Of a stretch of DNA of 64,000 nt, positions 37,072 through 47,367 are shown piece by piece (position 1 is the stretch's first letter; each line of letters starts with the position of its first letter). Under the pieces are notes generated by a model. It did no database searches. It saw only the letters and a list, made by a program, of their open reading frames with translations, and was not told the origin of the DNA. Source of the stretch: Macrostomum lignano (Eukaryota). Location of the stretch: positions 434,001 through 498,000 of the forward strand of contig NIVC01000038.1 in the NCBI GenBank assembly GCA_002269645.1, given 5' to 3'. The translations under genes were made by a program, and so were the position numbers.

Positions 37072-37406
37072 ATGAGCGGCAAAGTAATCTTTGTGTTGCT
37101 GATCATTATCTTAGCTCTGACTGGTGTCAACCAATCAATGCGATTACCAGCGTCTGAAGATTCTGTAAGTACCTCCGCCTTATAGCAGCGTTGACCTGGC
37201 TACAGCCAATAGTTGTTTAAAATTAAAAGCCGGAAAATTTCCAGCAGCCACCATCGGAGCTGAATGATTTTCTCCGCGTCATCCTGGCTGAGGCCCGAGC
37301 CAGACTGGGCGGTAATTTCGCCGACAAGAGGTCTGGCGAGAAGTCGTCGCGCTACGGTCGCTGCAGCGGAGTGTACCATCCGGTGGCGTGCTTCGGAGTG
37401 CAGTGA
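37072..37406 (+). CDS. Secreted prepropeptide with C-terminal disulfide loop, copy A (84 aa)
   Basis: Exons are 37072-37164 (donor GTAAGT) and 37245-37406 (phase 0, NAGNAG acceptor). Translation: MSGKVIFVLLIIILALTGVNQSMRLPASEDS|QPPSELNDFLRVILAEARARLGGNFADKR SGEKSSRYGRCSGVYHPVACFGVQ*. Confidence 0.8.
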
Positions 37407-38946
37407 TTTGACCTGCTCGACTACGTCACAAGCCTATCTTGAGCCATGCCTCGATTAAACTGAACAGAACACTACAAAAGTTCAGTTGTGCATTTGCCAA
37501 CTGTAGTGCCGAAAAAGACGGGAACTTACAATATCACCAGTTGATAATTTTTAATAAACGCAATCGCAATTGAAAAAAGGAAATTACGAGCCTACTCGTA
37601 TATGCAGACAGTTTCATTATATAGTGATTTAGTGTTTTTACTGCGATTGGTATGAAATCGATCAAAGACCACAAGAAGATACTGTTTGATTAGGACGTAC
37701 ATGTAAAACTCGAATTTAATGGAATTAGCTTCCACTACCACCAAGCAAAGAACAGAACAAGGAACATGGCAAATAGCTGGCGTAACCAGAACAGAAAGGA
37801 CAAAAGCCTTCTTCTCAAAGCCAAACCAAAAAGCAACAAGCAGAAGAAAGAAAACTAGCAAGAGCCGCTGTTAAAAGAGAAGAGATTCGCCGCATTCTGG
37901 CCGACCCGGGTTGGGCACGGCTTCGCAGGCACTAATTGCACTGTTGTTCTTGGTAGACGACTGCAGCTAGCGGGTGTGATAACGGGTCAAAGCGGGTGCA
38001 TGGCCAGGTGCTAGTGCCGGCAACAGTACTCTGCATTTTGACGAACTGGTTAGTTTTCCCATAGAAAAGGAAGTGAGTAGTAGTACTTCTTCATATTTTG
38101 CTAGCGAGCTCAAACGCAGCTGAGGCGGATAATTGACGTGCCTTCTCACTGGACTTCTTGAACAATTCCCTTCAGGCGCACAAACTTGACATTACAGTCT
38201 CACCAAAATCTTTTGCGGCTGGAGTGCCTTAATTGTAGTCACATGAGTTTCTTCCGGTTATATATATGTGTATCCATCTAGATTATAGGGGTCGGCAAAC
38301 TCCGGCTCGCGGACCCGCCAAGCCTCGCTATGCGGCCCTCTCAAGGCCGGCTTGTGTCTATTCTCAGCTCTCTTTCCTCTATAATTTCCTCTCGCTTTTC
38401 TTCTCCCTTCTCTTCTCTGGTCTCCTCTCCTCTCCTCTGTTTTCTCCTCTCCTCTCTTCTCCCTTCTCACCTCTCCTCTCCTCTACGAGCTTATGACTGG
38501 GTTTTTGTCCCGAGCAGCAGGTGCAGCACCCAAACGCCGCTTCCATAGGATCTGGGATAGGGACTTCTTGGACAAAGAAGAACAATAATTAAGTAGATGA
38601 GCTCTGAACAGGTACCTAATATCCATGTGTTGATTAATTTTCATTTATTCATACTTTTTTCCAGTTGCTGCAGTATCAAATTGACAATAATCGAATGTAC
38701 AGATTGCAGACTGCTCATAGTCACAGACGTATCCTTCTTGTGTTTAAATGTTGCTAAATGCATGGTACATGCACTTTCGAGAGCCTATATAGAATAGAAG
38801 AATGTAAATGAGTCAGTCCCATGAGTGATTTTCAGCTTAGGTTAAGCAGTGAATCCTACAAATTAGTCACGATGTGGCTATTTTTTCTGGATCTACTTTT
38901 AGGTGTTTTTCCGGTTATACAGGGATGGGGGTGCATCCATCTCGAT

Positions 38947-41216
38947 CAGGGGTCGGAACCTCCGGCCCGCGGGCCACAAGCCTTGGGACTCGGGTCCTTT
39001 GAAGCTTCACAATAGCAATACCATTCGCTCCACTCCTCTCAGCTCTCCTCTCCTATCTCTTCACATCTTTCCTCTTATTTCTCTCCTCTCCCTTGTCTCC
39101 TCTCCTATCTTCTTCCTTCTGTCCTCTCCCTTGTCTACTCTCCTCTCCTTTCTCTGATCTCCCTGGTCTCTTCTCCTCTCTTCTACCTTCTCTCCTTTCC
39201 CTTCTCTCATCTCCCTTCTTTCCTCTCCTTTCCTTCCTTTCGATCATCTAGCCCGTACATGTAAACCTTACATGTAGTTCTCTACTCCATGTAAGAAGTT
39301 CATAGAGAGCTGCTCTCTCTCTCTCTCTCTCTCTCTCTCTCTCTCTCTCTCTCTCTCTCTCTCTCTCTCTCTCTCTCTCTCTCTATCTCTCTCTCTCTCT
39401 CTCTCTCTATCTCTCTCTCTCTCTCTCTCTCTCTCTCTCTCTCTCTCTCTCTCTCTCTCTCTCTCTCTCTCTATCTCTCTCTCTCTATCTCTCTCTCTCT
39501 CTCTCTCTCTCTCTCTATCTATCTCTCTCTCTCTCTCTCTCTCTCTCTCTCTCTCTCTCTCTCTCTCTCTCTCTCTCTCTCTCTCTCTCTCTCTCTCTCT
39601 CTCTCTCTCTCTCTCTCTCTCTCTCTCTCTCTCTCTCTCTATCTCTCTCTCTCTCTATCTATCTCTCTCTATCTCTCTCTCTCTCTCTCTCTCTCTCTCT
39701 CTATCTCTCTCTCTCTCTCTCTCTCTCTCTATCTCTCTCTCTCTCTCTCTCTCTCTCTCTCTCTCTCTCTCTCTCTATCTCTCTCTCTCTCTCTCTCTCT
39801 CTCTCTCTCTCTCTCTCTCTCTCTCTCTCTCTATCTCTCTCTCTCTCTCTATCTATCTCTCCCTCTCTCTCTCTCTCTCCTCTCTCTCTCTGACCCTCGA
39901 CCTGCAATATCATGCTCTAGATTCTCTATCTGTCTCATAAAACAAAAAGTTTGCCAACCCCTCATCTATACGAGGTAGATTATTGATAATCATGGGTTTG
40001 ATTTTAACTCAGACCAGCGGATTGTTCAGGCGCTAAATTTGTTCCTTAGGAATTGTGGCGCCAAAATGATTTTCAAAGAAAATGACGGTAAAATCAAGAA
40101 GGTCAAGACATACGCACCATGCTTTCAAATTTTTAAACCGTCAAAACACTTCAGTTTAGAGAATCCTGAAGTAGACCAACAAAAGGGGCACTAATTTGAA
40201 AAAGGCAATCCTCATTAGCCAATATTCAGTATTTAAAAAAAAATTGATTCAATTTATTTGTTAAAATTTTAAGCATATTGAAATGAGGTTTTTTGCAAAA
40301 TAAATAAAATCAAAATGAGAAAACAACAATTAGCTAATGAAATTATATAAAAATGACTACAAAACCAAATTTGCAGACAAATAAATAAATCTTCTGAATT
40401 AAAAAACCTCACGGAACTCCGTTTGATTTTACTTTGGCAAAAAACTGAAAATAATTTCGTCAAAAAAGTCAGTCATTTACACGCACAACATGCAATATAA
40501 TACTTAGGTTACAACAAAGGTTGGAAAACTTTTTTATTACGTCAGGGGCCAGACAGAGAACCTAGTGCATGACTGCGGGGCAGCGAAGAGAGGATAAAGG
40601 GAATAGAGAAAAGAGATAGAATAAAGTGGACAAGAGGAGAGAAGAGATGACGCGAAAGGAGAGAAGATGAGTAAGAGGAGATAAGAGAAGAGAGACGAGA
40701 GGAGACGAGAGAAAAGATGGAGAGAGGAGGCAGGAGAAAAGAGAGAGGAGAGAAGAAAAGAGAGAGGAGAGAAGAAAAAGATGGAGATGAAATAAGAGAA
40801 GAGGAGAGGAGAGAAGAGATGGAGAGTAGAGAAGAGAGAGGAGAGGAGAGAAGAGAGAAGAAAAGGAGAGGAGAAGAGAGAGGAGAAAAGAGAGAGGAGA
40901 TGGAGAGGAGAGAAGAGATAGAGAGTAGAGAGAGAGGAGAGAAAAGAAGAGAAAAGAAAAGGAGAGAAGAGAGAGGAGAAAAGAGAGAGGAGATGGAGAG
41001 GAGAGAAAAGGAAGGAGAGAAGAGGTGGAGAGGGGAGAGGAGAGAAGAGGAGAGGTGAGAGGCAGAGAAGACAAGAGAGAAGAGAAGGAGATTAGAGAAG
41101 AGAAAGAGAAGAGAGCTGAAAAGACACAAACCTTAAGCGAGCTGGATCACTATGGTGAAATTCCAAAGGACCCAAGGGCCGCATGTGGCCCGCCGGCTGG
41201 AGTTTGCCGAGCCCGT
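38947..41216. mobile_element. Degenerate hAT-Charlie-like non-autonomous element(s), copy A
   Basis: Left ends CAGGGGTCGG(C/A)AAC..CGGCCCGCGGGCC occur at 38947 (also 38286). Right ends GTTTGCC(G/A)A(G/C)CC occur at about 39950-39962 and 41201-41216. Flanks are ATCTAGAT-like. The pairing of ends is uncertain. Confidence 0.5.
39312..39890. repeat. (CT)n microsatellite with CTAT interruptions
   Basis: About 580 bp of CT repeats, with no comparable tract in duplication copy B. Confidence 0.97.
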
Positions 41217-41303
41217 GATTACAGTGGTAAATTCTTAAATAAGCACTAAAACAATTTGATAATTTAATAGTTTGCTGTCAATTATTTTCAGTTTAACCTT
41301 ATG

Positions 41304-46429: not shown

Positions 46430-46740
46430 CTAATTTAGGACTAAATTGGAATCTCGGCTTGGCTCTGCTCGTACAATTAACGCCCTTGAGGGCCAACCCC
46501 CAAAGCACAGGGAAGTGTACATGTACATGCCTAACGATAAATTAAGTTAGGGCCGCTGTACACTCCTGTGTGAGTGTGTGCTTGCGCGTATGACTGCATA
46601 CGTATCCTGCATGTGTGCTTACTCAGGGGAGTCGGCGGAATGGGCAGCAATGCTTCTCGCCGGTTGTGTGAGAAAGCTAGTCGCTTTAAGTGCGCCAGGG
46701 TGCACACTGCCCTCTGTCCTTAACTAAATAGCATCTTAAA
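46430..46740 (+). mobile_element. SINE body, uninterrupted copy (5'-truncated)
   Basis: Colinear with the reverse complement of 60990-61270. It provides the empty sites for the three insertions in copy A. Confidence 0.8.
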
Positions 46741-47037
46741 CTTTGGAAGGGGCCTCCTGTCTGTAAATTAGAATCATTGCACATGTAGCGACATATTACT
46801 TAAACACGCAACGAGGATAACACAACTGATCATATTCAGATGCTGCCATCACCAATCAAGATTGAGGAATTTCGGATCGAAACTATCTCATTCGCCCTCG
46901 GTCACGACAGCCAGTAGCAGCGCTTCCTCAATCATAATTAGACAACCTATTCGTATATAAAAGAGACATCATTTTAAATAGTCATGACTTTTATTGCCAA
47001 CGAATCTGCTTATTAGTTCTCTAGTTAATGAAACACA

Positions 47038-47367
47038 ATGAGCGGCAAAGTAATCTTTGTGTTGCTGATCATTATCTTAGCTCTGACTGGTGTCAACCAA
47101 TCAATGCGATTACCAGCGTCTGAAGATTCTGTAAGTAACTCCACCTTATAGCAGCGTTTACCTTGCTGCTGCAGTTGTTAAAAATTCAAAACCGGAAATA
47201 TTCAGAAGCAACCATCAGAGCTGAATGATTTTCTCCGCGTCATCCTGGCTGAGGCCCGAGCCAGAGTGGGCGGTAATTCCGCCGACAAGAGGTCTGCTAG
47301 GAGGTTATCGCGCTACGGTCCCTGCAGCGGAGTGTACCATCCGGTGGCCTGCATTGGAGTGCAGTGA
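47038..47367 (+). CDS. Secreted prepropeptide with C-terminal disulfide loop, copy B (84 aa)
   Basis: Exons are 47038-47130 and 47206-47367. Translation ends ...EDS|KQPSELNDFLRVILAEARARVGGNSADKR SARRLSRYGPCSGVYHPVACIGVQ*. Confidence 0.8.

Follow-up and report, generated by a model that had tools for sequence, protein, structure and literature searches.

Secreted peptides closed into a loop by a single pair of cysteines have been described in several families, four of which bear on the genes reported here: melanin-concentrating hormone (MCH)-type peptides, allatostatin-C (AstC), elevenin (L11 peptide) and EP/CCHamide, the last comprising the excitatory peptide (EP, 'GGNG peptide') of trochozoans and the CCHamide of arthropods. 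Family definitions and sequences were taken from the papers cited. In the literature examined, MCH-type peptides are reported from deuterostomes only; the starfish precursor has 88 amino acids (aa) and a C-terminal two-cysteine peptide behind a dibasic site, and the family features are a Met or Ile right after the first cysteine (Cys1) and a basic residue penultimate to the second (Cys2) (PMC4772807). The ring of protostome AstC always has six residues (PMC9048919; PMC8786951), and spiralian AstC genes have one phase-0 intron within the pro-region (PMC9048919). AstC peptides stop at an aromatic residue (F, Y or W) next to Cys2 and are sometimes amidated. Elevenin is a non-amidated peptide of about 20 residues, in which Gly17 is the most alanine-sensitive position in Aplysia; the Aplysia precursor has 151 aa, and all 38 distinct elevenins in the supplement share an eight-residue ring with the pattern C-[R/L]-G-[V/I...] (PMC10175484). 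EP/CCHamide peptides, for which both sequences and definitions come from PMC6617912, are amidated (...GGN-GKR) and are encoded as a single copy directly after the signal peptide, with a long C-terminal part following the EP; in a tardigrade and a leech a spacer intervenes. They have an aromatic residue and often a His between the cysteines and GG or GA between Cys2 and the C-terminus, and the terminal residue is Asn in spiralians (PMC6617912). In flatworms, allatostatin-type ligands are unreported and related receptors have been reported (PMC6114109). Here we describe two neighboring genes, copy A and copy B, of the flatworm Macrostomum lignano, in NIVC01000038.1:434001-498000 of assembly GCA_002269645.1. 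This stretch of 64,000 nucleotides (nt) is called the window, and positions are counted from its first base. We hold, with moderate confidence, that the two genes are a lineage-restricted tandem prepropeptide pair, from which a disulfide-looped, non-amidated secreted peptide of 20-24 residues would be released as a neuropeptide or hormone.

Copy A and copy B are intact two-exon genes (Table 1). Each encodes 84 aa followed by TGA, and in each a GT..AG intron interrupts the frame in phase 0 after codon 31. An earlier note on this DNA, made from the letters alone, had proposed two 84-aa two-exon precursors, and translation of the window matched both of its gene models to the base. Its counts were likewise reproduced: exon 1 is identical in A and B at 93/93 nt, and six of the 24 residues that follow the Lys-Arg (KR) site differ. 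The copy A protein (84 aa) is MSGKVIFVLLIIILALTGVNQSMRLPASEDSQPPSELNDFLRVILAEARARLGGNFADKRSGEKSSRYGRCSGVYHPVACFGVQ; copy B departs from it by Q32K, P33Q, L52V and F56S and, after the KR site, by G62A, E63R, K64R, S65L, R70P and F81I. In both, KR occupies residues 59-60 and the cysteines are residues 71 and 80. No third copy was found within the window by tblastn.

The same pair lies on two more contigs, NIVC01000143.1 and NIVC01001253.1, and the order is always A-type followed by B-type. All six copies (three A-type, three B-type) are intact, with 84 codons, GT..AG introns, the KR site and both cysteines. Same-type copies share about 97-99% DNA identity across contigs, while A and B diverge by 0% in exon 1, 9-15% in the intron, 10-13% from codon 52 to the stop, 26% in the 3' flank and about 12% from -420 to -101. 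Since same-type copies are near-identical and A and B are more divergent, the A/B duplication predates the split of the three loci, and it is older than the recent genome duplication of the species. This order fits the hidden polyploidy of M. lignano (PMC10468722).

Differences fixed between the A and B types amount to none from -100 through exon 1, 5% of the intron, 1% of codons 32-58, 10% of codons 59-84 and 20-24% of the 3' flank. Alignment of the two types required no gap columns in the exons, 102 in the upstream region, 5 in the intron and 57 in the 3' flank. By the Nei-Gojobori method, codons 1-60 gave 0.02-0.03 nonsynonymous substitutions per site (dN) and 0-0.02 synonymous substitutions per site (dS), and codons 61-84 gave a dN of 0.10-0.14 and a dS of 0.27, hence a dN/dS of about 0.4-0.5. 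After KR, the linker at residues 62-65 accounts for four of the fixed changes and F81I for one more; position 70 (R70P) is variable among the A-type copies. The segment SRYG, the ring CSGVYHPVAC and the terminal GVQ are invariant in the six copies. This pattern is that of a putative bioactive core under constraint next to a free spacer, and is unlike diversifying selection. The peptides had been proposed to be under diversification; that proposal does not hold, given the dN/dS of about 0.4-0.5, a divergence of 10-13% where the adjoining 3' flank has 26%, and the invariant ring. Positive selection on the post-KR peptide was also considered, and was rejected on the same ratio.

Two further features of the peptide had to be revised once all six copies were compared. 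The A-type copy of NIVC01001253.1 has KK at residues 63-64, every B copy has RR, and the A copies of NIVC01000038.1 and NIVC01000143.1 have EK. A single-step codon path leads from AAG to either GAG or AGG; therefore the dibasic site at 63-64 is probably ancestral and was lost in the copy A of the window. The suggestion that copy B gained an RR site is thus doubtful, EK being confined to two A copies. Similarly, the ring had been described as flanked by RC and CF. This is true of copy A in the window and of its counterpart on NIVC01000143.1; elsewhere Pro stands before Cys1 (4/6 copies), and Ile follows Cys2 in the B type.

Three observations on divergence may be set beside these results. The divergence between A and B climbs from 5' to 3' (36972-37304 versus 37305-37970, and likewise at B), which may reflect gene conversion of part of the gene, its 5' half, or constraint on the nucleotides themselves. 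A special cause for the identical exon 1, such as gene conversion or RNA-level constraint, was considered and set aside: with 9% divergence of the intron at two of the three loci, and about 36 synonymous sites over codons 1-51, about three fixed synonymous changes would be expected, and finding none is only mildly out of the ordinary. Finally, copy B of the window carries a private cluster of changes at its 3' splice site (47170-47220) relative to the other two B copies. The cluster includes a 5-nt intron deletion and altered bases just 5' of the conserved CAG, with the AG acceptor kept, and it also contains Q32K, P33Q and a silent change at S35.

The N-terminus of the protein has the layout of a classical signal peptide: K4, then a 12-residue hydrophobic core, VIFVLLIIILAL, with a mean Kyte-Doolittle hydropathy of 3.85, then TGV[N/S][Q/R]S, with predicted cleavage at about residues 18-22. 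A pro-region of about 38 residues lies between signal peptide and KR site and is mildly acidic, with six acidic and four basic residues. AlphaFold2, run on a five-sequence alignment, predicted helices at residues 2-21 and 35-52 (per-residue confidence, pLDDT, 65-82; predicted template modeling score, pTM, 0.25), and left residues 56-84 unordered, the C-terminal 29 residues being of low confidence. The lack of predicted order from residue 56 on argues against a small folded domain and fits a processed precursor. KR is present in 6/6 copies and a second dibasic site in 4/6. The predicted products are 24-mers after KR, or 20-mers where the second site is present; they have isoelectric points (pI) of 7.8-8.8, are weakly basic and are not amphipathic. 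In reduced form, their calculated average masses are about 2574.8 Da for the A 24-mer, 2106.4 Da for the B 20-mer and 2114.4 Da for the 20-mer that a cut at KK would give from the A-type copy of NIVC01001253.1, and oxidation would take 2 Da off each. The protein ends in ...GVQ followed by TGA in all six copies, with no amidation signal. Hydropathy, the AlphaFold2 model and conservation among the six copies thus agree with the architecture first proposed: a signal peptide, a helical and mildly acidic pro-region, KR, and a C-terminal peptide with two cysteines. The pro-region segment PPSELNDFLRVILAEARA was also considered to be like CRF-type peptides in their N-terminal half, an idea that was dropped as Pfam gave no support.

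Given this layout, the product would be formed as follows. The signal peptide would be removed around residues 18-22, whereupon a prohormone convertase would cut at K59-R60 and, in the B copies and the A-type copy of NIVC01001253.1, also at residues 63-64. A carboxypeptidase would remove the basic residues, and a disulfide between Cys71 and Cys80 would close a ring with eight residues between the cysteines. The resulting non-amidated product of 20-24 residues, [S/L]SRYG[P/R]-C-SGVYHPVA-C-[F/I]GVQ, would then be released as an intercellular signal, either a neuropeptide or a peptide hormone, most likely acting on a rhodopsin-type G-protein-coupled receptor. That the peptide is secreted, cut out and closed by a disulfide is what we infer from the precursor, as are its cell type and its receptor. 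The gene structure, conservation, sequence features and annotation from transcriptome sequencing (RNA-seq) were observed directly.

The GenBank annotation of this assembly is genome-guided from RNA-seq, by means of StringTie, TACO, de novo assembly, TBONE and an expression filter in reads per kilobase per million (RPKM) (PMC5730564). A protein search returned one cluster with four members, all from GCA_002269645.1 and all named hypothetical protein: PAA70276.1, PAA89620.1 and PAA92826.1 (BOX15_Mlig027246g1, g2 and g3), and PAA70278.1 (BOX15_Mlig010105g1). Of the transcript clusters, Mlig010105 stands for the A type and Mlig027246 for the B type. The copy B protein is exactly PAA92826.1 (BOX15_Mlig027246g3), and the exact copy A protein had no match in the protein collection searched. 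On NIVC01000038.1 the gene range of PAA92826.1 is 10,296 nt, precisely 37072-47367 of the window: the GenBank model g3 joins exon 1 of copy A to exon 2 of copy B over an 'intron' of about 10.3 kb. Its product nevertheless equals copy B, because exon 1 is identical in A and B. On NIVC01000143.1, PAA89620.1 (g2) carries the exon-1 variants of the A type (S20, R21) fused to exon 2 of the B type, and this model is therefore chimeric as well, making two of the three GenBank Mlig027246 models (g2, g3). In consequence, the A-type genes on NIVC01000038.1 and NIVC01000143.1 are left with no model of their own. On NIVC01001253.1 the A and B genes, about 50 kb apart, are each annotated separately. The pair had been called unannotated; this is right for copy A, and wrong for copy B, which is annotated as PAA92826.1 albeit through a chimeric model. 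Spliced transcripts exist: because the gene models derive from RNA-seq, the lack of a spliced transcript, which the earlier note had named as fatal to its proposal, was not what we found. For each single copy this transcript evidence is indirect. Users of the M. lignano annotation should correct BOX15_Mlig027246g2 and g3, each of which combines exon 1 of one paralogue with exon 2 of the next.

Next, we compared the peptide with each of the described families, beginning with the two to which it had been likened at the outset, MCH and AstC. As in the starfish MCH-type precursor of 88 aa, the M. lignano peptide is C-terminal behind a KR site and non-amidated, and the precursor is of similar size and layout (PMC4772807). 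The eight-residue ring is also that of vertebrate MCH. The tetrapeptide V-Y-[R/H]-P, common to the MCH ring and the M. lignano ring, is placed differently, VYHP lying two positions earlier than VYRP. In addition, all six copies have Ser72 after Cys1, where MCH has Met or Ile, and Val78 penultimate to Cys2, where MCH has Lys or Arg. With the signature residues absent and no Pfam hormone family matched, membership of the MCH family is not supported.

The likeness to AstC comprises a phase-0 intron in the pro-region and a disulfide-loop peptide (the last 24 residues) that ends a short precursor after a basic site. Since a phase-0 intron and a C-terminal peptide are a common layout, this is weak evidence for AstC. 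The sequence ...H-P-V-A-C-F is also similar to the AstC ending ...N-[PV]-[IV]-[SA]-C-[FYW]. On the other hand, the ring has eight residues (SGVYHPVA) in 6/6 copies and not six, and the W-K motif of somatostatin/urotensin-like peptides is lacking. Moreover, the residue after Cys2, which is Ile in the B type, is followed by GVQ, whereas 16/16 AstC peptides end at the aromatic residue (PMC8786951 Suppl. Table 3). A hidden Markov model (HMM) of these 16 peptides gave the A type 5.2-5.7 bits (p = 0.005-0.008) and the B type 1.6 bits (p = 0.14), relative to shuffles with the cysteines fixed, and the alignment to the profile covered PVACF/YHPVACF only, with YHPVACF standing against FN[VI][VI][AS]C[FYW]. 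The ring size, the three-residue tail and the Ile of the B copies speak against membership of AstC.

Elevenin shares with the M. lignano peptide the eight-residue ring, G and V at positions +2 and +3 after Cys2, a length of about 20 residues and the lack of amidation. Its ring motif, [VP]-[FY]-[AH]-P, is similar too, with VFHP in Platynereis, and bivalve elevenins have CLGVAA. The differences are that VYHP stands one position earlier in the ring, so that the aromatic residue and the Pro are displaced; that the D or N before Cys1 is absent (R or P here); and that F or I stands where elevenin has R after Cys2 (L in bivalves). The 84-aa precursor with its C-terminal peptide also contrasts with the 151 aa of the Aplysia precursor. 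The elevenin peptide lies near the N-terminus of its precursor. A gapped HMMER search with the elevenin profile gave 3.4-3.7 bits (p = 0.03-0.05) and aligned VYHP-ACFGVQ with VFAP-xCRGVx. An in-register position-specific scoring matrix (PSSM) of elevenin was rejected as evidence: p was 0.2-0.26, and C-x8-C segments drawn at random from the loci translated in six frames scored higher.

The M. lignano peptide has eight residues between its cysteines, as do the EPs of annelids, molluscs, nemerteans and Lingula, and Y75 and H76 lie inside the ring. The ring starts with C-[SKA]-G and ends with A-C, after Cys2 come a hydrophobic or aromatic residue and a Gly, and four residues stand past Cys2. A trochozoan EP such as KCSGKWAIHACWGGN aligns in register with RCSGVYHPVACFGVQ, with no gap and 6/15 identities; in this alignment GRCSGVYHPVACFG stands against KC.G.WAiHaC.G, both cysteines being covered. 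There are differences as well. There is no amidation site, all six copies ending in ...GVQ and a stop; a pro-region of about 38 residues comes first and the peptide ends the protein; the central W-A-I-H of EP is V-Y-H-P-V here; and [F/I]-G-V-Q has one Gly, and Gln in place of Asn. A frequency PSSM of EP gave p = 0.02-0.06. When alignments of whole precursors were compared by hhalign, the same in-register segment was recovered over 14 columns (P = 0.0032, probability 10%). The EP profile in HMMER failed to support a match (-1.1 bits, p = 0.4), whereas CCHamide-1 scored 6.5 bits and a rotifer EP 13.1 bits. When 13 spiralian EP precursors were used for a profile search, EPs came up from nemerteans, brachiopods, molluscs and rotifers, and none from a flatworm; thus, the EP slot in flatworms is not obviously filled by a canonical EP.

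To place the families on one scale, an alignment of the mature peptide was compared by hhalign with alignments of EP (ring of eight), elevenin and AstC, and 1200 column shuffles with the cysteine columns fixed served as the null distribution. The observed scores were 15.3 for EP, 15.9 for elevenin and 12.7 for AstC, against null means of about 7.5. The corresponding shuffle p-values were 0.009, 0.0125 and 0.0125, with a best-of-three p of 0.022, and the observed summed z-score was reached by 0/1200 shuffles. The likeness lies mainly around Cys2 (aromatic-H-P-V-A-C-hydrophobic-G). As measured by these profiles, the residue order is non-randomly like that of protostome Cys-loop neuropeptides in general, and no family stands out. 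EP and elevenin, both with rings of eight, match at least as well as MCH or AstC, and no single-family fit is significant after allowing for the several families tried. On its sequence, the gene pair cannot be placed in MCH, AstC or any other known peptide family.

Searches beyond these families returned the genes themselves. Among 5.8 billion proteins, a word-indexed search matched the M. lignano cluster alone. A profile search gave one extra match, to the hydrophobic signal region of a 539-aa protein, which was dismissed as spurious. No hormone family was found in either protein by a Pfam-A scan, whose sole match, to PIR2-like in copy B (E = 0.25), is meaningless. The gene identifiers and peptide strings did not occur in the searchable full text of the literature. 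The literature searched contained no flatworm EP/CCHamide, elevenin or AstC-type ligand, and nothing relevant on a flatworm elevenin or, in the planarian prohormone paper, on flatworm Cys-loop peptides. Scans of the window for tRNAs and Rfam families found nothing.

The protein shows the generic layout of a neuropeptide precursor: a signal peptide as seen by inspection, conserved basic sites, and a short segment better conserved than the linker before it. The earlier idea of a candidate new flatworm neuropeptide is retained in its architectural part and given up in its assignment to MCH or AstC. Several points count against a neuropeptide or hormone. Among 1.84 billion representative proteins, searched exhaustively with a HMMER profile, no homologue was found outside M. 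lignano; therefore KR and the cysteines are shown to be conserved only between copies of 88-99% identity. The literature search found no expression, peptidomic or receptor data for the gene pair, and the gene identifiers are absent from the supplementary tables of four M. lignano expression studies. Most short invertebrate neuropeptides carry a signal for amidation, and this peptide does not. Cleavage of the signal peptide was placed by inspection, and the shuffle p-values are optimistic because the families were chosen after the sequence had been seen.

The main rival explanation is that the same processing yields an exocrine peptide, be it a gland product, a seminal-fluid or mating peptide, a pheromone, or a defensive or antimicrobial peptide. 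Many exocrine precursors, too, combine a signal peptide and a mildly acidic pro-region with a KR site and a disulfide loop at the C-terminus, and lineage restriction, tandem duplication and the lack of homologues in other phyla are usual in secreted effectors and reproductive proteins that evolve fast. A pheromone or defense role, which was raised at the outset, is conceivable. However, a weakly basic (pI 7.8-8.8), non-amphipathic peptide is a poor antimicrobial candidate, dN/dS below 1 and an invariant ring speak against evolution in an arms race, and the residue order is neuropeptide-like beyond that of the shuffles. The identifiers are also absent from reproduction-focused RNA-seq and from germline and neoblast tables, which may be incomplete or use other identifiers. 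We regard an exocrine role as rather unlikely, with a real share of the probability.

A second explanation, which overlaps with a neuropeptide or hormone, is that the pair is a divergent flatworm orthologue of EP/CCHamide, elevenin or AstC/somatostatin, in which the peptide moved or the ring was resized. The in-register hhalign match to EP (P = 0.003-0.004), the ring size and GV of elevenin, and the ending and gene layout of AstC point this way, as do the EP slot left unfilled in the profile search and the allatostatin-type ligands unreported in flatworms (PMC6114109). Nevertheless, the peptide agrees with no family in all of its defining features, the scores of the three are about equal, and the in-register elevenin PSSM reached only p = 0.2-0.26. 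HMMER scores are low as well (elevenin 3.4-3.7, AstC 1.6-5.7, EP -1.1 bits), true distant EPs reaching 6.5-13 bits. Orthology of this kind is unlikely.

An uncleaved small secreted or membrane-anchored protein (about 62-84 residues), or a transcribed open reading frame (ORF) with no function, is highly improbable: the hypothetical-protein names, the lack of a homologue elsewhere and transcript evidence that is indirect for each copy, because two of the three Mlig027246 models are chimeric, would allow it, but all six copies are intact and of the same length with no exon indels despite 26% divergence of the 3' flank, no globular fold is predicted (AlphaFold2, pTM 0.25), KR is invariant and the second dibasic site is kept in 4/6.

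The peptide genes are part of a larger duplicated unit, which consists of an NHL-repeat gene and a peptide gene in tandem. The features are collected in Table 1. The upstream NHL-repeat gene has a stop at 29543-29545 (KEVL*LTEQ versus KEVLKLTEQ), which makes it a pseudogene unless its translation starts at the ATG at 29570 (469-aa ORF). The second NHL-repeat gene sits inside the 'intron' of the chimeric g3 model; no gene is listed there on NIVC01000038.1 and the protein collection searched has no exact match, while NHL counterparts are annotated on NIVC01001253.1. Two BAAT/acyl-CoA thioesterase genes (PF04775, PF08840) on the minus strand, at 52064-55262 and about 14225-15013, flank the region, which suggests a larger segmental order of BAAT, NHL, peptide, NHL, peptide, BAAT. 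The downstream BAAT gene overlaps minisatellites with units of 21 nt (52533-53505) and 18 nt (54056-54574).

Repeats are frequent in this part of the window. A (CT)290 microsatellite is flanked by CT-rich minisatellites, and GA-rich arrays are also present (39313-39891; 38391-39232; 40632-41115; 51393-51876). The long minus-strand 'ORFs' at 40542-41129 and 51303-51890 are artifacts of such low-complexity runs. A dispersed repeat of 1.6 kb, with the GA-rich array inside it, occurs at 40124-41732 and 50897-52492 with 95% identity. Far younger than the A/B duplication, it probably represents an element that is mobile or satellite-bearing. A G-rich tandem array at about 4900-5850, with GGEADSRGGEA repeated in translation, was a source of noise in the tblastn search.

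Table 1. Features of the duplicated peptide genes and their surroundings, in window coordinates
Feature	Position	Strand	Remarks
NHL-repeat gene upstream of copy A	29423..30979	+	same tandem cassette; in-frame stop at codon 41
Duplicated block around copy A	36716..38789	+	matches 46645-48683 at 70-82% identity
TATAAAA box, copy A	36990..36996	+	82 nt 5' of ATG
Copy A exon 1	37072..37164	+	93 nt, 31 codons; ends in phase 0 at GTAAGT donor
Copy A signal-peptide coding part, MSGKVIFVLLIIILALTGVNQS	37072-37137	+	rest of exon 1 is the start of the pro-region
Copy A intron	37165..37244	+	80 nt, GTAAGT...TTCCAG, phase 0
Copy A exon 2	37245..37406	+	pro-region helix; KR 37326-37331; C-terminal peptide; TGA 37404-37406
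Copy A C-terminal peptide, SGEKSSRYGRCSGVYHPVACFGVQ	37332-37403	+	Cys codons 37362-37364 and 37389-37391
ATTAAA hexamer, copy A	37454-37459	+	
AATAAA poly(A) signal, copy A	37553..37558	+	147 nt past stop
NHL-repeat gene upstream of copy B	44272..45831	+	519 aa, intact; 92.7% protein identity to the first
Duplicated block around copy B	46645..48683	+	matches 36716-38789
TATAAAA box, copy B	46956..46962	+	82 nt 5' of ATG
Copy B exon 1	47038..47130	+	93/93 nt same as copy A exon 1
Copy B intron	47131..47205	+	75 nt, GTAAGT...ATTCAG, phase 0
Copy B exon 2	47206..47367	+	KR 47287-47292; RR 47299-47304; TGA 47365-47367
Copy B C-terminal peptide, SARRLSRYGPCSGVYHPVACIGVQ	47293-47364	+	Cys codons 47323-47325 and 47350-47352
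ATTAAA poly(A) signal, copy B	47539..47544	+	172 nt past stop

Flatworm neuropeptide catalogues consist mostly of amidated linear peptides. M. lignano is the flatworm with established stable transgenesis (PMC8717057). A disulfide-loop candidate is directly testable in this species, and the conserved promoter of about 350 bp could drive a reporter. The finding bears on a long-standing open question only if the peptide is orthologous to a known family. It is doubtful, though conceivable, that the pair is the missing flatworm member of the EP/CCHamide-elevenin group with eight-residue rings (less likely of AstC/somatostatin), its peptide moved to the C-terminus and its amidation lost. If this were true, the peptide would be a ligand for a receptor family that has so far had no known flatworm peptide.

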